A DNA stretch of 64,000 nucleotides from Rebecca billardiae RCC1528. Its lineage: Eukaryota; Protista; Haptophyta. Each line of letters starts with the position of its first letter. The first letter of the stretch is position 1. This document shows, in pieces, positions 10,929 through 42,397 of the stretch. The stretch is from NCBI GenBank assembly GCA_965240325.2, contig OZ251225.1:2480001-2544000 (forward strand). The letters run 5' to 3'. The translations under genes were made by a program, and so were the position numbers. The notes under the pieces were generated by a model. The model was not told the origin of the DNA. It worked only from the letters and a program-made list of their open reading frames with translations, and searched no databases.

Positions 10929-13019
10929 TCACGCATTGTCATATGTTCTAGCCGCCTGGCCTGCTGTGGCGGGCGCGCGGCTGAGCGACGGCTGCGCGGC
11001 GGTGGACGCGCCCGGCTCGGCCGACCAGATGATCGGGAAGGCAAAGACCTGCCTGCCGAGCTGGAAGAGCGTGTGCGGCGCCGCCAGCGCGAGCCCAGGG
11101 ACGGGCGCGCCGCGCCGCGTGCGCTCGACTGCGCCGATCGCGCGTGTGCTCGTCACGCTCGGCACGGAGACACCCGCGTGTCTGTACCCGGCAGCCAGAG
11201 CGATCGTCACAATCACGTCCCCCTCGTTCCACACGCGCAGCCCGCCCGCCGGGCGCGCGTGCGCGCGCACGTGGGAGACAAAGGCGTCGCTGCCGACAGC
11301 GGGCGCGCCAAATGTGACGAGCGATGGCCGACGCGCCCAGAAGTGCGCCGCCGCGAGCGTCGCGAGCGCGCCACCCATCGAGTGCCCGACGAAGACAAGC
11401 TCCGCGTCCGCCGGCGCGCGCGCCAGCTCCTGCTCGAGCTGAGGCAGGACGGACTCGAATGCGGCGAGGAACCCGCCATGCACAGACATGGCGGGCGGCC
11501 TGCCCGGCCACGCGCCATCGCCGCCGCCGCCTGCGCCCGCCGCCGCCGCCGGCGCGCCCGCGGACGCCACACGCGCAGGCGGCTTGAACGACCGCGGCAG
11601 GAAGGTCGCGTCCGTGATCAGATCTGGGAAGGCCTCTTTGGTGCCTCGGAACGAGACGACGACCGGTGGGCGCGCGGAGGGCAGCGGCGTGGCCACGTCA
11701 GGCGCAGGCGCAGCAGATGGCTCGCGCTCGCGTGAGCCTCCGGAGGCACCGCGCCCGCCGGTGGGCACGGCGACGAGGGCACATGCTCGCTCCGACTCGA
11801 CCGTGCTGATGTTCACCGGAGCGCTGCCGAGCGCGCGCTGCACCAGTGACTCGATCACGCGCGCCTCGGCGGGCGCAAGACCTCGCTGGATGGACGTGCG
11901 GCGCGCGGCATCCTCGGCTGGAGGCCGGAGCTTGAGGTTGTACGGCGCCTGCGCGAGCAGGAGCGCGGCCTCGATCCAGGCCAGGGTGCTGCCCTCCTCG
12001 GCCGCGCTGAGAGGCCGAGGCGGCGGCGCGGCGGACGTGGCGGCGGGCGGCGCGGCGCGCGGCGCGGACGGCGGAGGCTGTGTGCCGGGTGCAGCCACGC
12101 CACCGGCCGCCGCCGCGGCGGCGCCGACGCGCGACGCCGCGGCTGGCGAGGCACACGCGGCATGCAGCTCCGCGAGCGAGTGCCGCAGGTGCGTCTCCGC
12201 GCCTGACCACGAGACGATCGTTCGGACCTCCTGCGCGCCCGACGCGCGCACGGCCGAGCCGAGCTGCGCCTCGACAGCGGTGCGCGGCACGCCCGACGCC
12301 TCGAGGAGGAGGCCGCCGAGGGGCGCCGGGAGCGCGCGGAGGAAGTCTCGACCGGCCGCGCGCGCGCTCACGCCCGCGAGCGCGCCCTCGAGCGCGAGCA
12401 CGGCCTGCGCAGTCGACAGATTGGCGGCACGCGCGAGCGCAAGCAGCGGCGGCGCGGCCGCGCGCGAGTCGGTGAGCAGTTGGGCCCAGCTGCCGGTTGC
12501 GACGTCGCGCGCGACGCGCGTGAGGTTGGACGTGAGCGCCGTGATGTTTGTGACAGCGTCCACACCGGGCGCGCGCGCGCCGGCGCTCGTCGAGAGCGCT
12601 GCGGGCCTCGCCGTGCGCGGGAGCTCAGCACTCAGCACGGTGCGGGCGGCCTGCTCGACCACCTCGGCGGCTTTCACGAGCTCGGCGAGCTCGATGACGG
12701 CGCCGGAGTCCTTCTTGTTGAGCACGCCAGAGAAAGTGGACAGCGCCCGGCGCACGAGCCGCTGCACACTCAGCGAGAGGCCTGGCACGAGCGTCTCATT
12801 CGCACGAGCAGGCTCGCCCGCCATGCGAATGCAAGCGCGCCGCGCACGGCCGGCGGCGAGCCCGCTCGACAGTGCGAACGCTACCCGCCGCGGACGGGCA
12901 GGGCGTGCGCGCGATCGTATGGGGCTGCGAAGCGCGGGCCCATGCCCCGTGGTCGTCGGAAGCGCCAGCAGCACCAGCGCGAGCACCGCGCACGGCCACC
13001 AGCACCGCGCGGCCGCCAT
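10929..13019 (-). CDS. Class 3 (fungal-type) lipase with N-terminal signal/transit-like presequence
   Basis: VSFRGT, VHGGF, nucleophile elbow GHSMGG, TFGAPAVG, RVWNEGDVI, distal His (APHTLF). Hydrophobic signal followed by an Arg/Ser/Ala-rich stretch. Confidence 0.88.
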   Translation of the reverse strand: MAAARCWWPCAVLALVLLALPTTTGHGPALRSPIRSRARPARPRRVAFALSSGLAAGRARRACIRMAGEPARANETLVPGLSLSVQRLVRRALSTFSGVLNKKDSGAVIELAELVKAAEVVEQAARTVLSAELPRTARPAALSTSAGARAPGVDAVTNITALTSNLTRVARDVATGSWAQLLTDSRAAAPPLLALARAANLSTAQAVLALEGALAGVSARAAGRDFLRALPAPLGGLLLEASGVPRTAVEAQLGSAVRASGAQEVRTIVSWSGAETHLRHSLAELHAACASPAAASRVGAAAAAAGGVAAPGTQPPPSAPRAAPPAATSAAPPPRPLSAAEEGSTLAWIEAALLLAQAPYNLKLRPPAEDAARRTSIQRGLAPAEARVIESLVQRALGSAPVNISTVESERACALVAVPTGGRGASGGSREREPSAAPAPDVATPLPSARPPVVVSFRGTKEAFPDLITDATFLPRSFKPPARVASAGAPAAAAGAGGGGDGAWPGRPPAMSVHGGFLAAFESVLPQLEQELARAPADAELVFVGHSMGGALATLAAAHFWARRPSLVTFGAPAVGSDAFVSHVRAHARPAGGLRVWNEGDVIVTIALAAGYRHAGVSVPSVTSTRAIGAVERTRRGAPVPGLALAAPHTLFQLGRQVFAFPIIWSAEPGASTAAQPSLSRAPATAGQAARTYDNA

Positions 13020-13416: not shown

Positions 13417-16400
13417 TCAGCGAAGGGTGCAGACGCCGAGGAAGCGCACAACGGGCGAGATGATGCGCAGCGAGATGAATTGCTGCACGCCCTTCGGCAG
13501 GCTCGCCAGCGCGTATCTCGCGAGCGGCGAGATGAACGCGACGGCGGGCTCGAAGATGAGCAGCTTGAGCACGCACGAAGTCACGAGCGCCACGAGCAGC
13601 GGGCCCGTCCACGTGTTCAGGTCTCGGAGGATGGGGTTGAAGAGCGAGTACAGGATGAGCAGCGCGTACATGCACAGCCCGAGCAGGGCGTGCACGCTCC
13701 ACGCGAGGACCAGCTTCCACCGGCGCGGGCGCGACCACCACAGCTGCGCAATCTTGAGCGACTTGTCGTCGATGCGCGAGTACGCCTCCACCTCGCTGAT
13801 GTCGGCGACGCCCGCAGGCAGCCGGCGGCGGCGCGAGGGCGAGGGCGGCGGCGCGGCGGCGGCGGTCGAGCCGCCGCCGTCCACCCAGATGTTCTCCTCC
13901 GGCGCGGGCGCCTCGGACGCGGATGCCACCGGCGAGGCGGGCAGCAGACGCGCTGGTGGCTGCCGCTTGAACGCGGCGAGCAGCTGCGCGCGCGCCACGT
14001 CCGGCTCGCAGAAGAGGTCGTCGGTGGTGATGCGCCGGCCGTCGACAAACGGCGAGCCAAACGGCACGGCGAAGACCATGTTCGACTGCTTCTTCGACAG
14101 CCGCGCCGCGGCCTTGGGCTTGATGTGGTAGTAGCGCGTGGCCACCCGGTCCGCGTGCGCGTCGGCCGCCTGGTACACGAGCTGCGCCTGCACGAAGCGC
14201 AGGTCGGGCACGTGCTCCGGACGGTACTCGGCGTGCGGGCTCTCTGCAGCCTCGGCCGCGTCCTCGGCAGCGGCCGAGCCGCGCCGTTGGCGCGGCGTCG
14301 GCATGATCGTGCCAATCACGCGGTCGACGAGGCCGCGGCGCGCCGCCATCGCGGCGCGCTGCTCGAGGAAGCGCTGCCGCGCCACCTCGGTCGCGTCCGC
14401 CACGCCCACGCGCACGAAGAAGCCCACCATCTCGCCGCGGCGCGTGTGCACGGCCATCAGCGCCTTGGCGGGCATGCGGATTGGCGCGCGCGAGCCCATC
14501 TCCGCAATCTCAGCGCCGTTGCGCGGCGCGATGCCCACCTTGGACGGGCAGACGTACAGCAGCTTGTGCGCGCTCGACAGCACCGCGAGCGGCACGCTGC
14601 TGCCGTCGTCGCTCAGCCCGGCGATCTTGCCGCTGCGCTCGGACGCGGACGCGCCCTCCGACGTCTCCGACGCCGTGTCCGCGCGCGAGCTCGTGCGGGC
14701 GGTGAGCGCGCGCCGGGCCGACGACGTGTCCGAGTCGTCGTCGGCGATCAGCTCTTCGATCAGGTCGCGCCAGTCCTCCGGCATGCCGAGCTGCGACGCG
14801 CGCCGGTTGCGCTCCGCCAGGATGGCCTCCTCCGGCTCGCCCTCGTCGTCCGAGTCGGACGCCGCGCCGCCGGGCACGCCGTGCGTGTGCGCCCGGACCG
14901 GAGCGGTGCGGTCGGTGACTGGGCCAGCCACCTGGACCGCGCGCGCCGCGAGGCGCGAGACGCGCCGGCAGCGCGCCGCCAGGATGAGCTCCTCCAACTC
15001 GCCATCGTCCTCCGAGTCGGACGCCGCGGCGGGCGCGCTGTTGGACGGCCGCGGGGCCGGGACGACGCGGTCGGCGGTCGAGCTGGCCGCCTGCTCGCGC
15101 GCGCGCGCCGCCAGCGCGGGCCCAAAGCGCAAGACCCTCGGCCGCGGCGGGCTTGGCGGCGGCGACGGCGCGGGCACGCCCGAAGGCCCGCGCTCGTCGG
15201 CCGAAGCCGCATCGATGTCGTGATCGTCCACCGGCAAGACGCGCGCCCCGCTGCTCGCGCGTGCCGGGCTCAGACCGACTGCCGCAGGCTCCTGCGCCTG
15301 CAGCAGCCCGGCGAGCGCGCCGGCTGGCATCGAGTTGGAGCGCCTCATCGGGCGTCGGCGCGAGGGGTGCGTCGGCGGGCTCGGCGGCGGCGACGGCGGC
15401 GTCGGCGGCGGCAGCCGCGTGCGCGCCATGCGCCGCGCGGGCTCGGAGTCGCGCTCGTCGTCCGAGTCGCCCGGCGAGATGCGCGCACCGCGCTTGAGCA
15501 TCGCCGCCCTGAGCTCGCCGCCGCCCATCGAGTGCGCCTTTGCGAGCAGGCGCGATGGCCGTGGCGGGCTCGGCGGCGGCGATGGCGCGGGCGCGGGCGG
15601 CGGCGGCACCACGGCCGTCATCGGCATCTCCTCGCGCTTGCGGATCGACAGCCGGAACGGCAGCGCGGCGCGGCAGCAGCAGGCGCACGCGCAGAGCCGC
15701 GTCCACAGCGACTGCCGCTTGAGCTCGCGGTTGTACTTTTTGATAATCCGGTGCTTGAGCCGCGCGAGCGGGCGGCGCCGGTTCGCCCAGCGGAAGAGGA
15801 AGTGGATGGCGAACTCGAAGGGCACGGCGAGACCGACGGTGAGCAGCGCCAGCGTGAGCACGTCGCGCGCCAGCCAGGACTCCTGCCCGATGCACGCGAC
15901 CGCGACCAGCAGCTGCGCGAGCAGCGTGTTGTACAGCACGGTGACGCGCTGCCGCGAGGTGACGAGCTCGCCCGGCAGCCGCGTGAGCCACCACGAGAAG
16001 GTCGAGTGCGCGAGCAGCGAGGCGCCCAGCGCGTGGCACAGCCCGGCGTCCTCCTTGCGCTTCCACAGCGGCACGAACGGCTCGCGCTCGACGTGCCGGT
16101 CGTGAATGTGCGCGCAGTAGTAGAGCGAGACGTACGTGATCAGCAGGAAGAACAGGAGCACCTGCGCCGTGTACGCGAAGGCCAGGGAGGAGTCGAGCCT
16201 CACCGCCTGCGCGTCGAGCGGCTGGCCGTCCGCCGCGACGTTCGGATCGACGGACAACTCGGGCTCGGCGCGGTACACGGCGATGAAGTCGGTGAGGTGC
16301 GTGCACTCGCACGTTGTGACGTCGCTGAACGCGTCGCCCGCGTCCACGCAGCCCTCGCTGCCCCACGCGTCGCCCGCCCAGAAGCGGCAGCTGAAGCCCT

Positions 16401-19400
16401 CCGCGTCCTCGTCGCCCGCCGGCAGGATCTTCGGGTCGACCGGGAGATCGATGCGCACGATCGGCGGGAGCTCGCCCGCGGCGGTGAACTGCGTGAAGTC
16501 GATGGCGAGCGGCGCGCCGTTGAGCCACACGTTCACGCTCGTGAGCGAGGCTGCCATCCCGTACCCGTTGAGGTTGCTGAACGCGCGGAAGTTCTTCTCC
16601 CACAGCACGACCGCCACGTGCAACGAGTCGAGCTGCGACGCGTTGGTCGCGTTGAGCAGCCCGCGGCCCAGCATGAACTCGAGCGTGGCCACGGGGATAG
16701 TGAAGGTGGCGTGGGCGAGGGCGTCCCCCACCATCACCTCGGGCGAGTCGACCACAATGTCGGCCAGCCCGAACGTCGCCGGGTGGACGTGCTGGACCAC
16801 GACGGCCGCGCTGCCGTACACCGTGTCCACCGTCTCGCGCAGCTGGGAGCCCGCGCGCAGCGCGCTCAGCTGGCTCGAGATGAACGAGTCCACCGCCTCG
16901 TTGATCTGGTCGGCGCGGTAGCTCGCCTCGCCGTACGCCTCGTCTGCGCCGCCGGGGCCGCCGTCCACGCCGCCGAGGCTCGCGCTGGAGGCGTCGGTCG
17001 TCTCGTCCGGCAGCACGCCCAGGTCGAGCAGCGCCTCCACCGCCTCCTCGATCCAGTCGCCGGGCGGAGGGGGCGAGGGCGGCGGGCTTGGCGGCGGCGA
17101 GGGCGGTGGCGAGGGTGGCGGCGCAGGGCCACCAGGGCCGCCGCCACCTTCCGCGGGCGGCGGAGGCGAGGGCGGTGGCGAGGGTGGCGGCGCAGGGCCA
17201 CCAGGGCCGCCGCCACCTTCCGCGGGCGGCGGAGGCGAGGGCGGTGGTGACGGAGGCGGCGGCGGGCTCGGCGGCGGCGCCGGCGGCGGCGAGGGCGGTG
17301 GCGAGGGTGGCGGCGCAGGGCCACCAGGGCCGCCGCCACCTTCCGCGGGCGGCGGCGGCGAGGGCGGTGGCGAGGGTGGCGGCGCAGGGCCGCCAGGGCC
17401 GCCGCCACCTTCCGCGGGCGGTGGGGGCGAGGGCGGTGGTGACGGAGGCGGCGGAGGCGGCGGGCTCGGCGGCGGCGGGCTCGGCGGAGGCATCGGAGGA
17501 GGCGACGGCGGCGGCGGCGGTGGAGGGCTCGGCGGCGGCGGGCTCGGCGGGGGCATCGGAGGCGGCGACGGCGGCGGCGGCGGTGGAGGGCTCGGCGGCG
17601 GCGGGCTCGGCGGCGGCATCGGTGGCGGCGACGGCGGCGGCGGCGGTGGCGGGCTGGGAGGTGGCGGGCTTGGCGGCGGCATGGGCGGAGGCGAGGGCGG
17701 CGGCGGCGGTGGAGGGCTCGGCGGCGGCGGGCTGGGTGGCGGGCTCGGCGGCGGCGATGGTGGTGGTGGCGGCGGCGGACTCGGCGGTGGCGGGCTTGGA
17801 GGGGGAGAAGGCGGCGGTGACGGTGGAGGCGGCGGAGGAGGGCTCGGCGGTGGCGGACTCGGCGGTGGAGATGGCGGCGGCGATGGCGGTGGTGGCGGCG
17901 GCGGGCTCGGCGGCGGCGGGCTGGGCGGCGGGCTCGGCGGCGGCGATGGTGGTGGTGGCGGCGGCGGACTCGGTGGTGGCGGGCTTGGAGGGGGAGAAGG
18001 CGGCGGTGACGGTGGAGGCGGCGGAGGAGGGCTCGGTGGTGGCGGACTCGGCGGTGGAGATGGCGGCGGCGATGGCGGTGGTGGCGGCGGCGGGCTCGGC
18101 GGCGGCGGGCTGGGCGGCGGGCTCGGCGGCGGCGATGGTGGTGGTGGCGGCGGCGGACTCGGTGGTGGCGGGCTTGGAGGGGGAGAAGGCGGCGGTGACG
18201 GTGGAGGCGGCGGAGGAGGGCTCGGTGGTGGCGGACTCGGCGGTGGAGATGGCGGCGGCGATGGCGGTGGTGGCGGCGGCGGGCTCGGCGGCGGCGGGCT
18301 GGGCGGCGGGCTCGGCGGCGGCGATGGTGGTGGTGGCGGCGGCGGACTCGGTGGTGGCGGGCTTGGAGGGGGAGAAGGCGGCGGTGACGGTGGAGGCGGC
18401 GGAGGAGGGCTCGGTGGTGGCGGACTCGGCGGTGGAGATGGCGGCGGCGATGGTGGTGGTGGCGGCGGCGGGCTCGGCGGCGGCGGGCTGGGCGGCGGGC
18501 TCGGCGGCGGCGATGGTGGTGGTGGCGGCGGCGGACTCGGTGGTGGCGGGCTTGGAGGGGGAGAAGGCGGCGGTGACGGTGGAGGCGGCGGAGGAGGGCT
18601 CGGTGGTGGCGGACTCGGCGGTGGAGATGGCGGCGGCGATGGCGGTGGTGGCGGCGGCGGGCTCGGCGGCGGCGGGCTGGGCGGCGGGCTCGGCGGCGGC
18701 GATGGTGGTGGTGGCGGCGGCGGACTCGGCGGTGGCGGGCTTGGAGGGGGAGAAGGCGGCGGTGACGGTGGAGGCGGCGGAGGAGGGCTCGGTGGTGGCG
18801 GACTCGGCGGTGGAGATGGCGGCGGCGATGGCGGTGGTGGCGGCGGCGGGCTCGGCGGCGGCGGGCTGGGCGGTGGGCTCGGCGGCGGCGATGGTGGTGG
18901 TGGCGGCGGCGGACTCGGTGGTGGCGGGCTTGGAGGGGGAGAAGGCGGCGGTGACGGTGGAGGCGGCGGAGGAGGGCTCGGTGGTGGCGGACTCGGCGGT
19001 GGAGATGGCGGCGGCGATGGCGGTGGTGGCGGCGGCGGGCTCGGCGGCGGCGGGCTGGGCGGCGGGCTCGGCGGCGGCGATGGTGGTGGTGGCGGCGGCG
19101 GACTCGGCGGTGGCGGGCTTGGAGGGGGAGAAGGCGGCGGTGACGGTGGAGGCGGCGGAGGAGGGCTCGGTGGTGGCGGACTCGGCGGTGGAGATGGCGG
19201 CGGCGATGGCGGTGGTGGCGGCGGCGGGCTCGGCGGCGGCGGGCTGGGCGGCGGGCTCGGCGGCGGCGATGGTGGTGGTGGCGGCGGCGGACTCGGTGGT
19301 GGCGGGCTTGGAGGGGGAGAAGGCGGCGGTGACGGTGGAGGCGGCGGAGGAGGGCTCGGTGGTGGCGGACTCGGCGGTGGAGATGGCGGCGGCGATGGCG

Positions 19401-20919
19401 GTGGTGGCGGCGGCGGGCTGGGCGGCGGCGGGCTGGGCGGCGGGCTCGGCGGCGGCGATGGTGGTGGTGGCGGCGGCGGACTCGGCGGTGGCGGGCTTGG
19501 AGGGGGAGAAGGCGGCGGTGACGGTGGAGGCGGCGGAGGAGGGCTCGGTGGTGGCGGACTCGGCGGTGGAGATGGCGGCGGCGATGGCGGTGGTGGCGGC
19601 GGCGGGCTCGGCGGCGGCGGGCTGGGCGGCGGGCTCGGCGGCGGCGATGGTGGTGGTGGCGGCGGCGGACTCGGCGGTGGCGGGCTCGGAGGGGGAGAAG
19701 GCGGCGGTGACGGTGGAGGCGGCGGAGGAGGGCTCGGTGGTGGCGGACTCGGCGGTGGAGATGGCGGCGGCGATGGCGGTGGTGGCGGCGGCGGGCTCGG
19801 CGGCGGCGGGCTGGGCGGCGGGCTCGGCGGCGGCGAGGGAGGTGGTGGCGGCGGCGAGCTGGGCGGCGGCGGCGACGGCGGCGGCGAGGGAGGAGGTGGC
19901 GGCGGCGGGCTCGGCGGCGGCGGGCTCGGCGGCGGGCTCGGCGGCGGCGATGGCGGTGGCGGCGGTGGCGAGCTGGGCGGTGGTGGCGACGGCGGCGGCG
20001 ATGGCGGCGGCGGTGGCGGCGGAGATGGCGGCGGCGGGCTGGGAGGCGGGCTCGGCGGTGGCGAAGGCGGTGGCGGAGGCGGCAAGCTGGGCGGCGGCGG
20101 CGACGGCGGCGGCGATGGCGGCGGCGGTGGTGGCGGAGATGGCGGCGGCGGGCTTGGAGGCGGGCTCGGCGGCGGCGATGGCGGTGGCGGCGGTGGCGAG
20201 CTGGGCGGTGGTGGCGACGGCGGCGGTGATGGCGGCGGCGGCGGCGGCGGGCTTGGCGGCGGAGGGCTTGGCGGCGGGCTTGGCGGCGGGCTTGGCGGTG
20301 GCGGCGGTGGCGAGCTGGGCGGCGGCGGCGACGGCGGCGGCGATGGCGGCGGAGGCGGCGGCGGAGATGGCGGCGGCGGGCTTGGCGGCGGGCTCGGCGG
20401 CGGCGACGGCGGTGGCGGCGGTGGCGATCTGGGCGGTGGTGGCGAAGGCGGCGGTGATGGCGGCGGGGGCGGCGGCGGGCTGGGCGGCGGCGGGCTTGGA
20501 GGCGGGCTCGGCGGCGGCGACGGCGGTGGCGGCGGTGGCGAGCTGGGCGGCGGCGGCGACGGCGGCGGCGAGGGAGGAGGTGGCGGCGGCGGGCTCGGCG
20601 GCGGCGGGCTCGGCGGCGGGCTCGGCGGCGGCGATGGCGGTGGCGGCGGTGGCGAGCTGGGCGGTGGCGGCGACGGCGGCGGCGATGGCGGCGGTGGCGG
20701 CGGCGGGCTCGGCGGCGGCGGGCTGGGCGGCGGGCTCGGCGGCGGCGACGGCGGTGGCGGTGGAGGCGAGCTGGGTGGCGGAGGTGACGGTGGTGGCGAT
20801 GGCGGCGGCGGCGGCGGCGGGCTCGGCGGCGGCGGCGACGGAGGCGGGCTCGGAGGCGGCGACGGCGGGGGCGGCGGTGGCGAGCTGGGCGGCGGCGGCG
20901 ACGGCGGTGGCGATGGCGG

Positions 20920-20954
<35 letters not shown>

Positions 20955-21945
20955 GAGGCGGGCTCGGCGGCGGCGACGGCGGTGGCGGCGGTGGCGAGCT
21001 GGGCGGCGGCGGCGACGGCGGCGGCGAGGGAGGAGGTGGCGGCGGCGGGCTCGGCGGCGGCGGGCTCGGCGGCGGGCTCGGCGGCGGCGATGGCGGTGGC
21101 GGCGGTGGCGAGCTGGGCGGTGGCGGCGACGGCGGCGGCGATGGCGGCGGTGGCGGCGGCGGGCTCGGCGGCGGCGGGCTGGGCGGCGGGCTCGGCGGCG
21201 GCGACGGCGGTGGCGGTGGAGGCGAGCTGGGTGGCGGAGGTGACGGTGGTGGCGATGGCGGCGGCGGCGGCGGCGGGCTCGGCGGCGGCGGCGACGGAGG
21301 CGGGCTCGGAGGCGGCGACGGCGGGGGCGGCGGTGGCGAGCTGGGCGGCGGCGGCGACGGCGGTGGCGATGGCGGCGGCGGCGGCGGCGGGCTCGGCGGC
21401 GGCGGCGACGGAGGCGGGCTCGGAGGCGGCGACGGCGGGGGCGGCGGTGGCGAGCTGGGCGGCGGCGGCGACGGCGGCGGCGATGGCGGCGGAGGCGGCG
21501 GCGGGCTCGGCGGTGGCGGAGACGGAGGCGGGCTCGGCGGCGGCGACGGCGGTGGCGGCGGTGGCGAGCTGGGCGGCGGCGGCGACGGCGGCGGCGATGG
21601 CGGCGGAGGCGGCGGCGGGCTCGGCGGTGGCGGAGACGGAGGCGGGCTCGGCGGCGGCGACGGCGGTGGTGGCGGTGGCGAGCTGGGCGGCGGCGGCGAC
21701 GGCGGTGGCGAGGGCGGCGGCGGCGGCGGCGGAGATGGCGGCGGCGGGCTTGGCGGCGGGCTCGGCGGCGGCGACGGCGGCGGCGGCGGAGGCGAGCTAG
21801 GCGGTGGTGGCGACGGCGGCGGTGATGGCGGCGGTGGCGGCGGCGGGCTCGGCGGTGGCGGGCTGGGCGGAGGGCTCGGCGGCGGCGACGGCGGTGGCGG
21901 AGGCGGCGAGCTGGGCGGCGGCGGCGACGGCGGCGGCGATGGCGG

Positions 21946-21978
<33 letters not shown>

Positions 21979-23718
21979 GGGCGGCGGGCTCGGCGGCGGC
22001 GACGGCGGTGGCGGCGGTGGCGAGCTGGGTGGCGGAGGTGACGGTGGTGGCGATGGTGGCGGGGGCGGCGGCGGGCTCGGCGGTGGCGGGCTTGGGGGCG
22101 GACTCGGCGGCGGCGACGGCGGTGGCGGAGGCGGCGAGCTGGGTGGCGGCGGCGACGGCGGCGGCGATGGCGGCGGCGGCGGCGGCGGGCTCGGCGGAGG
22201 CGGGCTGGGCGGCGGGCTCGGCGGCGGCGACGGCGGTGGTGGCGGCGGCGAGCTGGGCGGCGGCGGCGACGGCGGCGGCGATGGCGGCGGGGGCGGCGGC
22301 GGAGATGGCGGTGGCGGAGACGGAGGCGGGCTCGGAGGCGGCGACGGCGGTGGCGGCGGTGGCGAGCTGGGCGGTGGAGGCGACGGCGGTGGCGAGGGCG
22401 GCGGTGGCGGCGGCGGAGATGGCGGCGGCGGGCTTGGTGGCGGGCTCGGCGGCGGCGACGGCGGTGGCGGAGGCGGCGAGCTGGGCGGTGGTGGCGACGG
22501 CGGCGGCGATGGCGGCGGAGGCGGCGGCGGGCTCGGCGGTGGCGGGCTGGGCGGAGGGCTCGGCGGCGGCGACGGCGGTGGCGGAGGCGGCGAGCTGGGC
22601 GGCGGCGGCGACGGCGGCGGCGATGGCGGCGGGGGCGGTGGCGGAGATGGCGGCGGCGGAGACGGAGGCGGGCTCGGAGGCGGCGACGGCGGTGGCGGCG
22701 GTGGCGAGCTGGGTGGTGGTGGCGACGGCGGCGGCGATGGCGGCGGCGGCGGCGGCGGGCTCGGCGGTGGCGGAGACGGAGGCGGGCTCGGAGGCGGCGA
22801 CGGCGGTGGCGGCGGTGGCGAGCTGGGCGGTGGTGGCGACGGCGGCGGTGATGGCGGCGGCGGCGGTGGGGGGCTCGGCGGTGGCGGGCTGGGCGGCGGG
22901 CTCGGCGGTGGCGACGGCGGTGGCGGAGGCGGCGAGCTGGGCGGTGGTGGCGATGGCGGCGGCGATGGCGGCGGGGGCGGTGGCGGAGATGGCGGTGGCG
23001 GAGACGGAGGCGGGCTCGGAGGCGGCGACGGCGGTGGCGGCGGAGGCGAGCTGGGTGGCGGAGGTGACGGTGGTGGCGATGGCGGCGGCGGCGGCGGCGG
23101 GCTCGGCGGCGGCGGAGACGGAGGCGGGCTCGGAGGCGGCGACGGCGGTGGCGGCGGAGGCGAGCTGGGTGGCGGAGGTGACGGCGGTGGCGATGGCGGC
23201 GGCGGCGGCGGCGGGCTCGGCGGCGGCGGAGACGGAGGCGGGCTCGGAGGCGGCGACGGCGGTGGCGGCGGAGGCGAGCTGGGTGGCGGAGGTGACGGTG
23301 GTGGCGATGGCGGCGGCGGCGGCGGCGGGCTCGGCGGCGGCGGAGACGGAGGCGGGCTCGGAGGCGGCGACGGCGGTGGCGGCGGTGGCGAGCTGGGCGG
23401 CGGCGGCGACGGCGGCGGCGATGGCGGCGGAGGTGGCGGCGGGCTCGGCGGTGGCGGCGACGGAGGCGGGCTCGGCGGCGGCGACGGCGGTGGCGGCGGA
23501 GGCGGGCTCGGCGGCGGCGGGCTGGGCGGCGGGCTCGGCGGCGGCGACGGCGGTGGTGGCGGTGGCGAGCTGGGCGGTGGTGGCGACGGCGGCGGCGATG
23601 GCGGCGGCGGCGGCGGCGGGCTCGGCGGTGGCGGGCTTGGCGGAGGGCTCGGCGGCGGCGACGGCGGTGGCGGCGGTGGCGAGCTGGGCGGTGGTGGCGA
23701 CGGCGGCGGCGATGGCGG

Positions 23719-23751
<33 letters not shown>

Positions 23752-23832
23752 GGGCGGCGGGCTCGGCGGCGGCGACGGCGGTGGCGGCGGTGGCGAGCTG
23801 GGCGGTGGTGGCGACGGCGGCGGCGATGGCGG

Positions 23833-23865
<33 letters not shown>

Positions 23866-23946
23866 GGGCGGCGGGCTCGGCGGCGGCGACGGCGGTGGCG
23901 GCGGTGGCGAGCTGGGCGGTGGTGGCGACGGCGGCGGCGATGGCGG

Positions 23947-23981
<35 letters not shown>

Positions 23982-24402
23982 GCGGAGGGCTCGGCGGCGG
24001 CGACGGCGGAGGCGGCGGTGGCGAGCTGGGCGGTGGTGGCGACGGCGGCGGCGATGGCGGCGGTGGCGGAGGCGGGCTCGGCGGCGGCGGAGACGGAGGC
24101 GGGCTCGGAGGCGGCGACGGCGGTGGCGGAGGCGGCGAGCTGGGCGGTGGTGGCGACGGCGGCGGTGATGGCGGCGGCGGCGGCGGCGGGCTCGGCGGTG
24201 GCGGGCTGGGCGGAGGGCTCGGCGGCGGCGACGGCGGTGGCGGAGGCGGCGAGCTGGGCGGCGGAGGCGACGGCGGCGGCGATGGCGGCGGCGGCGGCGG
24301 CGGGCTCGGCGGTGGCGGGCTGGGCGGAGGGCTCGGCGGCGGCGACGGCGGTGGCGGAGGCGGCGAGCTGGGCGGCGGCGGCGACGGCGGCGGCGATGGC
24401 GG

Positions 24403-24435
<33 letters not shown>

Positions 24436-24972
24436 GGGCGGCGGGCTCGGCGGCGGCGACGGCGGTGGTGGCGGTGGCGAGCTGGGCGGCGGCGGCGACG
24501 GCGGCGGCGATGGCGGCGGCGGCGGCGGCGGGCTCGGCGGTGGCGGCGACGGAGGCGGGCTCGGAGGCGGCGACGGCGGCGGCGGCGGTGGCGAGCTGGG
24601 CGGCGGCGGCGACGGCGGCGGCGATGGCGGCGGCGGCGGCGGCGGAGATGGCGGCGGCGGGCTTGGCGGCGGGCTCGGCGGCGGCGACGGCGGCGGCGGC
24701 GGAGGCGAGCTAGGCGGTGGTGGCGACGGCGGCGGCGATGGCGGCGGCGGCGGCGGCGGAGATGGCGGCGGCGGGCTTGGCGGCGGGCTCGGCGGCGGCG
24801 ACGGCGGCGGCGGCGGAGGCGAGCTAGGCGGTGGTGGCGACGGCGGCGGCGATGGCGGCGGAGGCGGCGGCGGGCTCGGCGGTGGCGGGCTGGGCGGAGG
24901 GCTCGGCGGCGGCGACGGCGGTGGCGGAGGCGGCGAGCTGGGCGGCGGCGGCGACGGCGGCGGCGATGGCGG

Positions 24973-25005
<33 letters not shown>

Positions 25006-25656
25006 GGGCGGCGGGCTCGGCGGCGGCGACGGCGGTGGTGGCGGTGGCGAGCTGGGTGGCGGAGGTGACGGTGGTGGCGATGGCGGCGGGGGCGGCGGCG
25101 GAGATGGCGGTGGCGGAGACGGAGGCGGGCTCGGCGGTGGCGATGGTGGTGGCGGAGGTGGCGAGCTGGGCGGCGGCGGAGACGGCGGCGGTGACGGCGG
25201 CGGTGGCGGCGGCGGAGATGGCGGCGGCGGGCTGGGAGGCGGGCTCGGCGGTGGCGAAGGCGGTGGCGGAGGCGGCGAGCTGGGCGGCGGCGGCGACGGC
25301 GGCGGCGATGGCGGCGGTGGCGGCGGCGGGCTCGGCGGTGGCGGAGACGGAGGCGGGCTCGGAGGCGGCGACGGCGGCGGCGGAGGCGGCGAGCTGGGTG
25401 GCGGCGGAGACGGCGGCGGTGACGGCGGCGGCGGCGGCGGCGGAGATGGCGGCGGCGGGCTGGGGGGCGGGCTCGGCGGCGGCGACGGCGGTGGCGGCGG
25501 TGGCGAGCTGGGCGGTGGTGGCGACGGAGGCGGCGATGGCGGCGGCGGCGGCGGCGGGCTCGGCGGTGGCGGAGACGGAGGCGGGCTCGGAGGCGGCGAC
25601 GGCGGTGGCGGTGGCGGCAAGCTGGGCGGTGGAGGCGACGGCGGTGGCGATGGCGG

Positions 25657-25689
<33 letters not shown>

Positions 25690-28600
25690 GGGCGGCGGGC
25701 TCGGCGGCGGCGACGGCGGTGGTGGCGGTGGCGAGCTGGGTGGCGGAGGTGACGGTGGTGGCGATGGCGGCGGGGGCGGCGGCGGAGATGGCGGTGGCGG
25801 AGACGGAGGCGGGCTCGGCGGTGGCGATGGTGGTGGCGGAGGTGGCGAGCTGGGCGGCGGCGGAGACGGCGGCGGTGACGGCGGCGGTGGCGGCGGCGGA
25901 GATGGCGGCGGCGGGCTGGGAGGCGGGCTCGGCGGTGGCGAAGGCGGTGGCGGAGGCGGCGAGCTGGGCGGCGGCGGCGACGGCGGCGGCGATGGCGGCG
26001 GTGGCGGCGGCGGGCTCGGCGGTGGCGGAGACGGAGGCGGGCTCGGAGGCGGCGACGGCGGCGGCGGAGGCGGCGAGCTGGGTGGCGGCGGAGACGGCGG
26101 CGGTGACGGCGGCGGCGGCGGCGGCGGAGATGGCGGCGGCGGGCTGGGGGGCGGGCTCGGCGGCGGCGACGGCGGTGGCGGCGGTGGCGAGCTGGGCGGT
26201 GGTGGCGACGGAGGCGGCGATGGCGGCGGCGGCGGCGGCGGGCTCGGCGGTGGCGGAGACGGAGGCGGGCTCGGAGGCGGCGACGGCGGTGGCGGTGGCG
26301 GCAAGCTGGGCGGTGGAGGCGACGGCGGTGGCGATGGTGGCGGAGGGGGCGGCGGGCTCGGCGGTGGCGGGCTTGGCGGCGGGCTCGGCGGCGGGCTCGG
26401 CGGCGGCGGCGGCGGCGAGCTCGGCGGCGGGCTTGGAGGCGGAGGCGGCGGCAAGCTCGGTGGCGGACTCGGCGGCGGGCAGGGCAGCTTGGTGTGGAGC
26501 GCGTCGAGCACGACGTTCACCTTCTCCACGTCCGTCTGGTACGCCTCGGACGGCAGACGCATCACGTTGTCCACCATCGTGATCACCTGGCACTTGGTCA
26601 GCGGGTAGTCGTAGCCCGGGTGCGCCGCGTTGAGCACGGCCGCGACCGCGGTGCGCGAGAGCTGCCACCAGGCGTCGCCATTGGCATTCTCGCTGCGTGC
26701 GGCCTGCTGCATCACCTCGAGCAGCTGCCACGCGCCCTCCACCACGCGGTCGTACCACCCCGACTCCGCCTGCGTCACGTGGAAGAAGTCGTTGAACGAG
26801 ATGTTGGTAACGAGCCCCGCGGCGGCCCACCATTCCGTGACGTTCTGCCAGACCGCGGCCGAGCATGCCTCCTTCCCCTGCTCGATCAGCTTGTCGTAGG
26901 TGCTCTCGTTGACGGGCGGCTCGAGGAAGGACTCGAGCTCGGTCTCGTTGAAGAAGCTGTCAATCGGGCACTGCGTGACCGTGCTCTCCCCCGCGAAGAA
27001 GATGTTGCGCCTGCGCGTGCGGCGAGCGGCGAGCGGCGCGCGGAGAGGTGAGTTGCGCAAGGGTTGTTGGTGTCGCGCGCGGCCTCGGCACGCGCGAGCG
27101 CTCACCCTCCGAGAGTGCCGCAGTTGGCCTGCGCTCGACGAGCGTGCGCGCGGCGCGGGTAGGGGGCGGGTGCGGTGAGTGTCGCGACGCGGCCGTCGGT
27201 CAGGCGCGCGACGGCGGCACGGCGGCGCGTGCGCTCACCTTGGTGCACGGCGTGTGCATCGAGAAGTGGATCCGCTCGATGCCGCTGGCGTTGTGCCACA
27301 CGAGGGTGATGGCCGTCCTCTTCTGCACGGACGTGAGGAGGTACTGCTCGTCCTCCGGGTTGGGCGCGTCCTCCGGCTCCTTGGACGTCACGTACAGCTC
27401 GCCCACTTCGCAGTCGGTGATCTGGGGGTACGCCACCTCGTCCGCCACGCCGTCGGGCCGCACGGCGACGCGCTTCAGCGTGTCCTCGCTGACGAGGCCC
27501 GGGTACGCCGGGTTGGGCCCGTCGCGCAGCATGTCCGTCGGGAAGCACAGAATCTCGGTCGTCTGCACAGGGTCGTTCGAGCGCCCCCGGAGGTTGTCGA
27601 CGTCGAAGATGGTGAGCGAGATGGTCGGCACGTCGTACACGGGCGTGAACGTGCCGTCGAATTCTCCGCTCGCGTTCTTGCCCATGCGGCCGACCTGGAG
27701 CTCATAGTTGGTGCGCACGCGATCCGCGTTGCTCGGATCGTTCCGGTCAAAGAACTGCTGGTTGAGCGAGCCGAACGGCGAGTTGTCGATGCTGCCGTCG
27801 ATGATCGGAAACTTGCCGTTCTTCCTCGTGTTGTGCGGGATGTACTCGTTGAGCGCGGTGAGGCGGAGGGCGAGCAGCTCGCAGTTGTGCGAGAGGATGT
27901 TGTCCCAGATCATGAAGTTGTTCTCCGCCATGCAGTTCTGCTGCGGGCACGGAGCCCCGCTTCTGCTGTCGTCAAACGGGATGGTCGCAGCGAGCCAGTC
28001 GAGCCGCGGGTGCGTGATGGGCGTGCAGCTCGAAAACTGCGGGGGCGGCGGTGGTGGGGAGGGCGGAGGCGACGGAGGCGGGCTCGGCGGCGGCGACGGC
28101 GGTGGCGGCGGTGGCGGGCTGGGCGGTGGTGGCGACGGCGGCGGCGATGGCGGTGGCGGCGGTGGCGAGCTGGGCGGCGGCGGCGAGGGCGGCGGCGATG
28201 GCGGGGGCGGCGGCGGCGGGCTCGGCGGTGGCGGGCTTGGCGGAGGGCTTGGCGGCGGCGACGGCGGTGGCGGCGGCGGCGAGCTGGGCGGTGGTGGCGA
28301 AGGCGGCGGCGATGGTGGTGGTGGCGGCGGCGGGCTCGGCGGTGGCGGAGACGGAGGCGGGCTCGGCGGCGGCGACGGCGGTGGCGGCGGTGGCGAGCTG
28401 GGCGGTGGTGGCGACGGCGGCGGCGATGGCGGCGGGGGCGGCGGCGGAGATGGCGGCGGCGGCGACGGAGGCGGGCTCGGCGGCGGCGACGGCGGTGGCG
28501 GCGGTGGCGAGCTGGGCGGCGGCGGCGACGGCGGCGGCGATGGCGGCGGTGGCGGCGGCGGAGATGGCGGCGGCGGCGACGGAGGCGGGCTCGGCGGCGG

Positions 28601-28888
28601 CGACGGCGGTGGCGGCGGTGGCAAGCTGGGCGGCGGCGGCGACGGCGGCGGCGATGGCGGCGGTGGCGGCGGCGGAGATGGCGGCGGCGGGCTGGGAGGC
28701 GGGCTCGGCGGTGGCGACGGCGGTGGCGGAGGCGGGGAGCTGGGTGGTGGCGGCGATGGCGGTGGCGATGGCGGCGGCGGCGGCGGCGGGCTCGGCGGTG
28801 GCGGGCTCGGGGGCGGGCTCGGCGGTGGCGACGGCGGTGGCGGCGGTGGCGAGCTGGGTGGCGGCGGCGACGGCGGCGGCGATGGCGG

Positions 28889-28921
<33 letters not shown>

Positions 28922-29572
28922 GGGAGGCGGGCTCGGCGGTGGCGACGGCGGTGGCGGAGGCGGCGAGCTGGGCGGCGGCGGCGACGGCGGTGGCGATGGC
29001 GGCGGTGGCGGTGGCGGAGATGGCGGCGGCGGGCTGGGAGGCGGGCTCGGCGGTGGCGAAGGCGGTGGCGGAGGCGGCGAGCTGGGCGGTGGTGGCGATG
29101 GCGGCGGCGATGGCGGCGGCGGCGGCGGGGGGCTCGGCGGTGGCGGGCTCGGCGGCGGGCTCGGCGGCGGCGACGGTGGTGGCGGAGGCGGCGAGCTGGG
29201 CGGCGGCGGAGACGGCGGCGGTGACGGCGGCGGCGGCGGCGGCGGAGATGGCGGCGGCGGGCTGGGCGGCGGGCTGGGCGGCGGCGACGGCGGTGGCGGC
29301 GGTGGCGAGCTGGGCGGTGGTGGCGACGGCGGCGGCGATGGCGGCGGTGGCGGCGGCGGAGATGGCGGCGGCGGGCTGGGAGGCGGGCTCGGCGGTGGCG
29401 ACGGCGGTGGCGGAGGCGGGGAGCTGGGTGGTGGCGGCGATGGCGGTGGCGATGGCGGCGGCGGCGGCGGCGGGCTCGGCGGTGGCGGGCTCGGGGGCGG
29501 GCTCGGCGGTGGCGACGGCGGTGGCGGCGGTGGCGAGCTGGGTGGCGGCGGCGACGGCGGCGGCGATGGCGG

Positions 29573-29605
<33 letters not shown>

Positions 29606-32600
29606 GGGAGGCGGGCTCGGCGGTGGCGACGGCGGTGGCGGAGGCGGCGAGCTGGGCGGCGGCGGCGACGGCGGCGGCGATGGCGGCGGTGGCGGCGGCG
29701 GAGATGGCGGCGGCGGGCTGGGAGGCGGGCTCGGCGGTGGCGAAGGCGGTGGCGGAGGCGGCGAGCTGGGCGGTGGTGGCGATGGCGGCGGCGATGGCGG
29801 CGGCGGCGGCGGGGGGCTCGGCGGTGGCGGGCTGGGCGGCGGGCTCGGCGGCGGCGACGGTGGTGGCGGAGGCGGCGAGCTGGGCGGCGGCGGAGACGGC
29901 GGCGGTGACGGCGGCGGCGGCGGCGGCGGAGATGGCGGCGGCGGGCTGGGCGGCGGGCTCGGCGGTGGCGACGGCGGTGGCGGAGGCGGCGAGCTGGGCG
30001 GCGGCGGCGACGGCGGCGGCGATGGCGGCGGTGGCGGCGGCGGAGATGGCGGCGGCGGGCTGGGAGGCGGGCTCGGCGGTGGCGAAGGCGGTGGCGGAGG
30101 CGGCGAGCTGGGCGGTGGTGGCGACGGCGGCGGCGATGGCGGCGGCGGCGGCGGCGGGCTCGGCGGTGGCGGAGACGGCGGCGGGCTTGGGGGCGGCGAC
30201 GGCGGTGGCGGCGGTGGCGAGCTGGGCGGTGGTGGCGACGGCGGCGGCGATGGCGGCGGCGGCGGCGGCGGGCTCGGCGGTGGCGGGCTTGGCGGAGGGC
30301 TCGGCGGCGGCGACGGCGGTGGCGGCGGTGGCGAGCTGGGCGGTGGTGGCGACGGCGGCGGCGATGGCGGCGGCGGCGGCGGCGGGCTCGGCGGAGGCGG
30401 AGACGGCGGCGGGCTTGGGGGCGGCGACGGCGGTGGCGGCGGTGGCGAGCTGGGCGGTGGTGGCGACGGCGGCGGTGATGGCGGCGGCGGCGGCGGCGGG
30501 CTCGGCGGTGGCGGAGACGGCGGCGGGCTTGGGGGCGGCGACGGCGGTGGCGGCGGTGGCGAGCTGGGCGGTGGTGGCGACGGCGGCGGCGATGGCGGCG
30601 GCGGCGGCGGCGGGCTCGGCGGTGGCGGGCTTGGCGGAGGGCTCGGCGGCGGCGACGGCGGTGGCGGCGGTGGCGAGCTGGGCGGTGGTGGCGACGGCGG
30701 CGGCGATGGCGGCGGCGGCGGCGGCGGGCTCGGCGGAGGCGGAGACGGCGGCGGGCTTGGGGGCGGCGACGGCGGTGGCGGCGGTGGCGAGCTGGGCGGT
30801 GGTGGCGACGGCGGCGGTGATGGCGGCGGCGGCGGCGGCGGGCTCGGCGGTGGCGGAGACGGCGGCGGGCTTGGGGGCGGCGACGGCGGTGGCGGCGGTG
30901 GCGAGCTGGGCGGTGGTGGCGACGGCGGCGGCGATGGCGGCGGTGGCGGCGGCGGAGATGGCGGCGGCGGGCTGGGAGGCGGGCTCGGCGGTGGCGACGG
31001 CGGTGGCGGAGGCGGCGAGCTGGGCGGCGGCGGCGACGGCGGCGGCGATGGCGGCGGTGGCGGCGGCGGAGATGGCGGCGGCGGGCTGGGAGGCGGGCTC
31101 GGCGGTGGCGACGGCGGTGGCGGAGGCGGCGAGCTGGGCGGTGGTGGCGAAGGCGGCGGCGATGGCGGCGGCGGCGGCGGCGGGCTCGGCGGTGGCGGGC
31201 TGGGCGGCGGGCTCGGCGGTGGCGACGGTGGTGGCGGAGGCGGGGAGCTGGGTGGTGGTGGCGACGGCGGCGGCGATGGCGGCGGCGGCGGCGGCGGGCT
31301 CGGCGGTGGCGGAGACGGCGGCGGGCTTGGGGGCGGCGACGGCGGTGGCGGCGGTGGCGAGCTGGGCGGTGGTGGCGACGGCGGCGGCGATGGCGGCGGC
31401 GGCGGCGGCGGGCTCGGCGGTGGCGGAGACGGCGGCGGGCTTGGGGGCGGCGACGGCGGTGGCGGCGGTGGCGAGCTGGGCGGTGGTGGCGACGGCGGCG
31501 GCGATGGCGGCGGCGGCGGCGGCGGGCTCGGCGGTGGCGGAGACGGCGGCGGGCTTGGGGGCGGCGACGGCGGTGGCGGCGGTGGCGAGCTGGGCGGTGG
31601 TGGCGACGGCGGCGGCGATGGCGGCGGCGGCGGCGGCGGGCTCGGCGGTGGCGGAGACGGCGGCGGGCTTGGGGGCGGCGACGGCGGTGGCGGCGGTGGC
31701 GAGCTGGGCGGTGGTGGCGACGGCGGCGGCGATGGCGGCGGCGGCGGCGGCGGGCTCGGCGGTGGCGGGCTTGGCGGAGGGCTCGGCGGCGGCGACGGCG
31801 GTGGCGGCGGTGGCGAGCTGGGCGGTGGTGGCGACGGCGGCGGCGATGGCGGCGGCGGCGGCGGCGGGCTCGGCGGTGGAGGGCTCGGCGGCGGGCTCGG
31901 CGGTGGCGACGGCGGTGGCGGCGGTGGCGAGCTGGGCGGTGGTGGCGACGGTGGCGGCGATGGCGGCGGCGGCGGCGGCGGGCTTGGCGGCGGCGGGCTG
32001 GGCGGTGGGCTCGGCGGCGGCGACGGCGGTGGTGGCGGTGGCGAGCTGGGCGGTGGTGGCGACGGCGGCGGCGATGGCGGCGGCGGCGGCGGCGGGCTCG
32101 GCGGTGGCGGAGACGGCGGCGGGCTTGGGGGCGGCGACGGCGGTGGCGGCGGTGGCGAGCTGGGCGGTGGTGGCGACGGCGGCGGCGATGGCGGCGGCGG
32201 CGGCGGCGGGCTCGGCGGTGGCGGGCTTGGCGGAGGGCTCGGCGGCGGCGACGGCGGTGGCGGCGGTGGCGAGCTGGGCGGTGGTGGCGACGGTGGCGGC
32301 GATGGCGGCGGCGGCGGCGGCGGGCTCGGCGGTGGCGGAGACGGAGGCGGGCTCGGCGGCGGTGACGGCGGTGGCGGAGGCGGCGAGCTGGGCGGTGGTG
32401 GCGAAGGCGGCGGCGATGGTGGTGGCGGGGGCGGCGGGCTCGGTGGTGGCGGGCTCGGAGGGGGAGAAGGCGGCGGTGACGGTGGAGGCGGCGGAGGAGG
32501 GCTCGGTGGTGGCGGGCTCGGCGGTGGAGATGGCGGCGGTGATGGTGGTGGCGGCGGCGGCGGGCTCGGGGGCGGCGGGCTGGGCGGCGGGCTCGGCGGC

Positions 32601-33700: not shown

Positions 33701-33733
<33 letters not shown>

Positions 33734-34954: not shown

Positions 34955-34987
<33 letters not shown>

Positions 34988-37804: not shown

Positions 37805-37837
<33 letters not shown>

Positions 37838-37918
37838 GGGCGGCGGGCTCGGCGGCGGCGACGGCGGTGGCGGCGGTGGCGAGCTGGGCGGTGGTGGCGA
37901 CGGCGGCGGCGATGGCGG

Positions 37919-37951
<33 letters not shown>

Positions 37952-38602: not shown

Positions 38603-38635
<33 letters not shown>

Positions 38636-38830
38636 GGGCGGCGGGCTCGGCGGCGGCGACGGCGGTGGCGGCGGTGGCGAGCTGGGCGGTGGTGGCGACG
38701 GCGGCGGCGATGGCGGCGGCGGCGGCGGCGGGCTCGGCGGTGGCGGGCTTGGCGGCGGGCTCGGCGGCGGCGACGGCGGTGGCGGCGGTGGCGAGCTGGG
38801 CGGTGGTGGCGACGGTGGCGGCGATGGCGG

Positions 38831-38863
<33 letters not shown>

Positions 38864-39400: not shown

Positions 39401-39433
<33 letters not shown>

Positions 39434-41338: not shown

Positions 41339-41371
<33 letters not shown>

Positions 41372-41566
41372 GGGCGGCGGGCTCGGCGGCGGCGACGGCG
41401 GTGGCGGCGGTGGCGAGCTGGGCGGTGGTGGCGACGGCGGCGGCGATGGCGGCGGCGGCGGCGGCGGGCTCGGCGGTGGCGGGCTTGGCGGCGGGCTCGG
41501 CGGCGGCGACGGCGGTGGCGGCGGTGGCGAGCTGGGCGGTGGTGGCGACGGTGGCGGCGATGGCGG

Positions 41567-41599
<33 letters not shown>

Positions 41600-42364: not shown

Positions 42365-42397
<33 letters not shown>

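Follow-up and report, generated by a model that had tools for sequence, protein, structure and literature searches.

A free-standing polycystin-1-like module of GAIN domain and five membrane helices, at the predicted C-terminus of a giant Ser-Pro rod protein in the haptophyte Rebecca billardiae

Introduction

The 11-helix membrane layout of polycystin-1 is commonly regarded as one whole, and what its first five helices do is poorly understood. Can this front half stand apart from the channel half? The question is raised by a 64,000-nucleotide stretch of the haptophyte Rebecca billardiae RCC1528 (assembly GCA_965240325.2, contig OZ251225.1, positions 2,480,001 to 2,544,000 of the forward strand; the whole stretch is hereafter termed the window). 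At one end of a long open reading frame (ORF) in it, a sequence-only reading had described a polycystin-1-like membrane module at 13417-17050, with an intact cleavage site and lacking both the PLAT domain and the channel half. Our analysis recovers all the listed features of this module and places it in a larger context: what had been taken as a protein in its own right is predicted to be the C-terminal tenth of a much larger gene. The best overall explanation, to which we assign a probability of about 60%, is a surface rod protein of ~12,000 residues with a self-cleaving GAIN domain and a polycystin-1-like five-helix anchor.

All coordinates of the gene and its parts are window positions on the minus strand, and residue numbers of the module count along the translation of 13420-17100 on that strand. 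Individual exons or domains served as search queries; the spliced protein of 12,194 amino acids was assembled for counts of length and composition only.

The membrane module corresponds to the front five helices of polycystin-1

Hydropathy and an AlphaFold model agree on five transmembrane (TM) helices. The model covers residues 28-1227 of the piece and was made from an alignment (A3) of 29 sequences, paralogues and homologues taken together; its per-residue confidence (pLDDT) is 83-93 in the GAIN region, 83-97 in TM1-3, 75-92 in a domain of the long loop and 87-97 in TM4-5, with model residues 450-815 disordered. TM1 (16111-16185) is followed by a loop of ~55 amino acids with two short helices in the model, and a cytoplasmic juxtamembrane motif, STFSWWLTRLPGELVTSRQR (15916-16005), leads into the TM2-TM3 hairpin (TM2 15886-15957, TM3 15784-15861), which ends in PFEF...FLFRWANRRR. 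Beyond a long loop lies the TM4-TM5 hairpin (TM4 13639-13722, TM5 13531-13620), with WWSRPRRWK before it and ...LLIFEP at its end; a C-terminal amphipathic helix and then the stop codon follow (13417-13530, stop at 13417-13419). This is the helix order that had been proposed, down to the terminal LLIFEP. It is also the topology of polycystin-1, where TM1, a cytoplasmic loop, the TM2-3 hairpin and a second cytoplasmic loop, of ~215 residues, lead up to TM4-5, a hairpin whose turn is very short; the two proteins further share a GAIN/GPS region with an HL|T site directly before TM1 and the tight TM4-5 pair.

One test of this correspondence was an exhaustive structural alignment (VIA-align) of the model against 48,161 representative solved chains. 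Polycystin-1 ranked first (8z6b_A, Z 17.3, root-mean-square deviation 3.1 Å, 180 residues, 19% identity), with model residues 277-1163 aligned to polycystin-1 residues 3069-3610, namely TM1-TM5. Solved GAIN domains came after it at Z 10-15, and the next helical-bundle matches, adhesion G-protein-coupled receptor (GPCR) seven-helix domains included, at Z 6.8 or less. Chance Z values for helical bundles can reach about 13-14 in this procedure; the polycystin-1 match stands above that level and 10 units over the next helical match. Foldseek with the whole model recovered the GAIN domain only, and the helix bundle needed the exhaustive search. The polycystin-1-like character that the sequence-only reading had given to the membrane module is supported.

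At the sequence level, a profile of TM1-TM3 built from haptophyte paralogues and distant relatives (A5) had polycystin-1 chains as its best three matches in the PDB: 6a70_B (E 2.3e-7, 33.7 bits), 8z6f_A and 8z6b_A. The alignment spans the motif before TM2 (polycystin-1 HIWLSIWDRPPRSRFTRIQR against STFSWWLTRLPGELVTSRQR here) through the end of TM3, and the common motifs are W-L-S...P...T-R-x-Q-R before TM2 and P-x-x...FLFR after TM3. The earlier suggestion that the segment before TM2 resembles the FTRxQR stretch of PKD1 is thereby borne out, and by these profiles the resemblance is a true homology, established transitively. The correspondence of TM4-5 with polycystin-1 rests on the structural alignment of the model.

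The absence of the remaining polycystin-1 parts is supported as well. Neither PLAT nor PKD_channel has a Pfam match in the module at E≤1, and the model has five helices with no six-helix unit; since the TM1-TM2 loop is only ~55 amino acids long, it is too short for a PLAT domain to fit there. The protein stops 37 residues past TM5, with the stop and the C-terminus kept in paralogues, and the next same-strand gene begins 400 nucleotides further on with a signal peptide of its own. A channel exon further downstream is ruled out by this paralogue-conserved C-terminus together with the separate gene at 400 nucleotides. A REJ domain upstream of GAIN likewise has no Pfam match anywhere in the gene. 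The checks thus covered a seven-helix topology, a lack of similarity to PKD1 and downstream channel exons, and none of the three held. We are highly confident of the identity of the parts: a GAIN domain and TM1-TM5 homologous to those of polycystin-1, with no PLAT domain and no channel half.

The GAIN domain and its predicted cleavage site

The GAIN domain (16276-17061) is supported by the confident model and by both structure searches, with VIA Z values of 12-15 for the fold; Foldseek matched it to the solved GAIN domains of CD97, CELSR1, BAI3, GPR56 and latrophilin (probability 1.0, E 1e-5 to 1e-3). Within it the GPS motif (16285-16392, residues 237-272) scores 25.7 bits against the Pfam PF01825 cut-off of 22.5 (E 1.7e-5). 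The HLT triplet maps exactly where it had been placed, at 16291-16299, with the predicted autoproteolytic cut H-L|T falling between 16294 and 16293. The GPS sequence CRFW...W...C...CECTHLTDF, which includes four cysteines, two tryptophans and the H-L|T triad, is invariant in 16 paralogues. TM1 begins 36 residues past the cleavage site; the intervening stalk (16186-16293), TDFIAVY... plus ~30 disordered residues, is a candidate tethered peptide. GAIN domains cleave themselves while the fragments stay associated in both polycystin-1 and adhesion GPCRs, and they are known from Tetrahymena and Dictyostelium (PMC3321182).

As a separate observation, three paralogues, L038, L039 and L040 (C7:2317400-2321000, C23:851700-855300 and C3:333000-336200), show a break in the frame immediately past HLT (HLTG...), with TM1-3 resuming in another frame a few hundred bases further on. 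As read from the DNA, this break would fit an intron whose position coincides with the GPS cleavage site.

The TM3-TM4 loop holds a conserved folded domain

The loop had been described as a low-complexity cytoplasmic segment of ~650 amino acids. This description holds only for residues about 471-842, a disordered stretch (14587-15690) with PSPPPSPP and SDS(E/D)D motifs and a conserved RRASQLG at 14785-14805; residues about 839-1055 (13936-14586) form instead a conserved folded cytoplasmic domain of ~200 amino acids, which is kept across paralogues and foreign homologues. Folded alone, this domain is modelled with a mean pLDDT of 77 and with 94 residues at 90 or above. Pfam, a PDB profile search, Foldseek against the PDB and a feature search of the ESM Atlas gave no usable match to it; the best match in the wide VIA search had Z 4.6, on a single long helix, and the ESM Atlas searched by shape gave TM scores of at most 0.31.

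Several further features of the cytoplasmic parts may be recorded here. RRASQLG, which fits the basophilic-kinase consensus R-R-x-S and is followed by P-x-DW-x-DLI, is kept in the disordered loop of nearly all paralogues; upstream of this motif, the gene studied here carries an additional acidic SDSEDD-helix unit, a duplicated one. A cysteine at position -4 from the C-terminus (13420-13431, CTLR in this protein) is kept in close paralogues (CTFQ, CAFH, CTIH, CAIY and CAIH; the comparison comprised this gene with L025, L027-L030 and L032), and it is not present in more distant ones. Such a CaaX-like box could, judging by its sequence, direct prenylation of a multi-pass membrane protein.

The module belongs to a large family within the genome

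The genome searched comprises 72 Mb in 41 contigs; it contains a Thf1 homologue and is that of a photosynthetic eukaryote. At least 97 GPS matches were found genome-wide, nearly all in open frames of thousands of codons, along with 103 REJ matches, which mostly precede a GPS of the same frame by 1-2 kb. There are just two PLAT matches, both elsewhere than in this gene, and the PKD_channel matches, about 30, lie in separate, smaller frames apart from the GPS-bearing genes. The TM1-3 piece that follows the GPS matches 33 places in the genome, the C-terminal 367 residues more than 40, and the family profile finds about 40 TM1-3 modules; not one of these has a PKD_channel fused or adjacent to it, the nearest being 16-80 kb away.

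Roughly ten close paralogues share 53-68% identity across the entire module, and their C-termini fall at the same position. About 30 more are distant, and those at 25-32% identity keep the order of the parts. REJ domains are frequent among the paralogues, and in several REJ lies 1-2 kb upstream of the GPS; L012, L014, L033 and L035 are distant paralogues that share the TM module and have REJ upstream. In the subfamily of the gene studied here REJ is absent and the Ser-Pro rod leads straight into the GAIN domain.

Relatives in other organisms, some with other ectodomains and loops

A GAIN-to-TM3 profile (A2) run against 1.84 billion representative proteins gave 2,784 matches at E≤1e-3. In seven proteins from Logan/JGI contigs the module is complete, with both the loop domain and TM4-5 present. 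Four other relatives (P0017, P0038, P0064 and P0139) and a protein of Amorphochlora amoebiformis have GAIN-TM1-3 in common with it and differ in their loops and in their ectodomains, which are of the PKD-REJ-EGF-GPS type. In the metagenomic P0038 and P0139 (L042), the loop after TM3 carries a RhoGAP domain where the gene studied here has its novel domain, and this suggests, by domain content, an output to Rho-type GTPases in that branch. P0017 ends after a pair of helices; the sole PDB matches of that pair, weak ones (E 0.16), are to polycystin-1 TM4-5. With GAIN-TM1-3 common to these proteins and their loops so varied, channel-less relatives of polycystin-1 seem from the sequences to be widespread in protists, and the TM3-TM4 loop seems to behave as a slot for an output domain.

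The module is predicted to be the tail of a giant gene

GC content in the window is 60-75% across ordinary genes and rises to 81-86% in two long tracts of repeats. In the frame of the module, GC by codon position is 0.71/0.53/0.95 (95% at third positions), which marks the frame as coding. The module sits in an open frame of 4,562 codons (13417-27105), in which neither an ATG of its own nor a signal peptide was found. The frame opens with a GTG whose GT belongs to a predicted splice donor. Just upstream, and also on the minus strand, a frame of 7,668 codons (27200-50206) starts with an ATG and a clear predicted signal peptide, MVRALVALGALLLPAVAAS (50150-50206), and ends at AAG|GTGAGC. Two introns are predicted between them, of 110 nucleotides (27129-27238) and 95 nucleotides (27011-27105), which share the donor GTGAGCGC and the acceptor GCGCAG and flank a predicted micro-exon of 23 nucleotides (27106-27128, ANCGTLGG) that keeps the giant ORFs in frame. 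Splicing both out joins the two frames into 12,194 codons with a single stop (50206 to 13417). Because an ATG with a signal peptide occurs only at 50206 and the GT..AG introns restore the frame, we consider it likely that the module is the tail of one such predicted gene.

The predicted protein begins with an N-terminal globular head (45905-50149) of several domains joined by short Pro-rich linkers: three copies of a ~200-residue domain without assignment (about 48800-50100), a right-handed β-helix (about 47549-47998; Pfam Beta_helix, 46.2 bits) and two 'GYWKNH...WWQLSRT' domains (about 45950-46950). Next is Ser-Pro rod 1 (28000-45904), with 5,969 residues of 79% Pro and 21% Ser encoded by tandem DNA units of 114/342 nucleotides, followed by a non-repetitive segment (27239-27999) that closes exon 1 at AAG|GTGAGC. 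Past the introns, an inter-rod globular domain of the 'WWQLSRT' type, the third copy (26506-27010), precedes Ser-Pro rod 2 (17062-26505): 3,039 residues of PSPPP-type repeat and then ~100 residues of AEGGGGPGG/PPPS variants. Both rods, at 79% Pro and 20-21% Ser, are long Ser-(Pro)n repeats able by their sequence to form polyproline-II helices, as in hydroxyproline-rich or extensin-like rods; their glycosylation is predicted. Extracellular rod and head make up ~90% of the predicted protein.

The CTPGYWKNH...GWFDR...WELLEVMQ...WWQLSRTAAAAVLNA domain, of ~150 amino acids, occurs in three copies in the protein, each right before a Ser-Pro rod, and has no match in Pfam.

Two neighbouring genes may be mentioned. 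The next gene downstream (10929-13019, minus strand) encodes a secreted class-3 lipase of 696 amino acids (Lipase_3, 73 bits), whose N-terminal region is long and rich in Ala. At 52761-54428 (minus strand) lies an aldo/keto reductase (152 bits) with an N-terminal ShK toxin-like domain (35 bits), which is an unusual pairing.

Comparison with known systems

Several studied systems share parts of this architecture. In contrast to polycystin-1, the protein lacks a PLAT domain between TM1 and TM2, the channel half (TM6-TM11) and the TOP domain, and it has no REJ, PKD, LRR or lectin domains; its ectodomain consists of two Ser-Pro rods, and its TM3-TM4 loop is occupied by a novel domain. At the C-terminus, where polycystin-1 has a coiled coil that binds polycystin-2, the model shows the amphipathic helix. 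Human PKD1L3 likewise has no REJ (PMC1934368). Receptor-only family members have been described before: the sea urchin SpREJ proteins (SpREJ1/2/7-10) have 0, 1, 2 or 6 helices, some without PLAT (PMC1934368), and the brown-alga REJ-GPS protein Esi0130_0068 of Ectocarpus has 6-7 helices (PMC4700764). These SpREJ proteins and Esi0130_0068, with their REJ/GPS ectodomains, resemble the present protein in having fewer than 11 helices and no channel half. They differ from it in helix number, and PLAT is retained in some; an exact TM1-5 module has been described for none of them, and none is carried on micrometre-scale proline rods or belongs to an expansion of ~100 genes.

The mastigoneme axial protein MST3 of Chlamydomonas offers a precedent for the overall design: a giant surface polyproline rod of the hydroxyproline type with a polycystin-family membrane tether. 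Its polyproline-II helices reach lengths of hundreds of nanometres, and their membrane tether is an incomplete PKD2-like channel domain that SIP completes; MST3 has no GAIN domain (PMC11015965). The haptophyte protein has the complementary part, GAIN with polycystin-1 TM1-5 and no channel fold; a PKD2-like membrane domain of the MST3 type is not found in it, there being no PKD_channel match and the fold being that of polycystin-1 TM1-5. Adhesion GPCRs (class B2) share with it the GAIN fold, the GPS and a hydrophobic T-x-F stalk past the cleavage site, but their seven-helix domain is missing here; the GAIN-7TM linkage has been reported as a holozoan invention (PMC12716839). In our literature search, no paper was found on a family of GAIN with TM1-TM5 only, on its haptophyte expansion or on the anchoring of micrometre-scale Ser-Pro rods.

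A proposed mechanism and its alternatives

How might such a protein work? We advance the following cleavage and force-sensing scheme tentatively, at somewhat short of even odds. The rods would form glycosylated polyproline-II helices, by analogy with the Chlamydomonas mastigoneme proteins, and the GAIN domain would cut itself at HL|T with the two fragments staying joined non-covalently; a force-sensitive joint could thus fix a micrometre-scale glycosylated rod to the surface of the cell or flagellum. A pull on the rod might then strain or remove the N-terminal fragment and expose the TDFIAVY stalk, and the five-helix bundle might pass the change on to the conserved cytoplasmic domain, whose loop position is taken by RhoGAP in distant relatives.

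Several points weigh against the overall explanation of a surface rod protein with a self-cleaving GAIN and a five-helix anchor, or against parts of it. A profile of 12 haptophyte paralogues only (A1) retrieved nothing from the PDB but adhesion-GPCR GPS motifs, with polycystin-1 absent at E≤10, and a TM4-5 profile (A6) also missed polycystin-1 in the PDB, giving only insignificant matches to Sec61; because these two miss it on their own, the sequence link to polycystin-1 is transitive, via distant relatives. Transcription of the locus, its two introns and its 3' end are predictions from sequence, as are cleavage, surface location and signalling, and the rod lengths hinge on the assembly of tandem repeats of 9-18 kb. 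Nei-Gojobori estimates of the ratio of nonsynonymous to synonymous divergence (dN/dS) among paralogues are about 0.6-1.2 in every block and give no positive sign of constraint. These values are probably an artefact of the 95% GC at third codon positions, with dS suppressed; compared with the disordered loop, the TM and loop-domain blocks show nonsynonymous divergence among the paralogues that is lower by a factor of 1.5-2, and gene conversion or diversifying selection may act among them. In polycystin-1, moreover, the stalk agonist acts mainly on the TOP domain, and covariation links it as well to TM2-3 and TM4-5 at their outer ends (PMC11458180). With the TOP domain and channel half absent, the activation route cannot be the same; of the two stalk contacts only that with the outer ends of TM2-3 and TM4-5 could exist here.

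The alternative that survives best, though we think it unlikely, is a split polycystin complex. One of the ~30 PKD2-like channels, encoded by genes of their own, would be a conjectural partner to which the five-helix module binds in trans, so that rod, GAIN and channel together would reproduce polycystin-1/polycystin-2 as a mechanosensitive channel complex. A separate channel partner of this kind was what the sequence-only reading had envisaged for a receptor-only polycystin. The roughly 30 PKD_channel matches, all in genes apart from the GPS-bearing ones, would supply candidates, and in the polycystin-1 structures 6A70 and 8Z6B the same five helices lie beside a channel-type, voltage-sensor-like domain. 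One PKD_channel gene (C7:2129050-2129697) lies between the inverted paralogues L031 and L024, which are 47-48% identical to the gene studied here (C7:2103100-2148100); this is the only, loose genomic association of the two families that was seen, and adjacency is otherwise inconsistent, with distances of 16-80 kb. The tethering of a proline rod to PKD2 by Chlamydomonas MST3 (PMC11015965) also speaks for such a complex, but the contacts that hold polycystin-1 in its tetramer belong to the channel half, which is missing here.

Less probable still is a purely structural role, in which the module would be the anchor or shedding device of a surface fibril, or of a scale-binding or wall glycoprotein, with no signalling. 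That ~90% of the protein is extracellular rod and head fits this, and so does the resemblance of the about 100 GPS-bearing giant ORFs, with their varied ectodomains, to a surface-coat repertoire; a precedent for reduced anchors in the family comes from those REJ proteins of sea urchin that have 1-2 membrane helices (PMC1934368). A mere anchor, however, would have no need of the conserved cytoplasmic domain, the RRAS-LG motif and the conserved C-terminus, or of a RhoGAP at the same loop position in relatives.

Finally, an adhesion-GPCR-like seven-helix receptor or a non-functional or mis-assembled locus is very improbable: the GPS is by sequence closest to those of adhesion GPCRs, long ORFs arise easily in DNA of 75-86% GC and the locus is known solely from its sequence, but there are only five helices, no Pfam 7tm_2 match and a best seven-helix Z of 6.6 or less against 17.3 for polycystin-1, alongside a strong codon-position GC signal and block-wise conservation with paralogues and foreign homologues. 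A seven-helix GPCR as such is ruled out by the five predicted helices, the lack of 7tm_2 and the Z≤6.6 of seven-helix structures.

Significance

A large, conserved protist family of exactly GAIN and TM1-TM5 shows that this half of polycystin-1 can stand alone, and it suggests that the front half of polycystin-1 is an old, free-standing module. The context of a ~12,000-residue surface rod, in turn, changes the likely biology from that of the receptor-only reading: at about 0.31 nm per residue in the polyproline-II conformation, the combined span of the two Ser-Pro rods would be about 2.8 micrometres, and a self-cleaving joint would hold them. There is also a practical consequence, in that gene finders that halt at the two short introns or avoid repeats of 86% GC will miss or split such genes.

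Going further, the GAIN domain and the front five helices may represent an ancient autonomous receptor module, from which animal polycystin-1 would have arisen by fusion to a TRPP channel subunit and insertion of PLAT. In this alga dozens of free-standing copies, each with a different ectodomain of up to micrometre scale, would serve as force-sensing anchors of hairs or fibrils, docking in trans on PKD2-like channels or signalling via the novel loop domain. This wider scenario is speculative and, taken as a whole, doubtful. The family, together with relatives that have RhoGAP or a novel domain in their loops, gives a testable account of how polycystin-1 was assembled, and it offers a natural minimal system for the function of the GAIN stalk and the N-terminal helix bundle without the channel. 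If the ancient-module reading is true, the alga would possess a combinatorial mechanosensory surface, complementary to the MST3-SIP-PKD2 system of Chlamydomonas.

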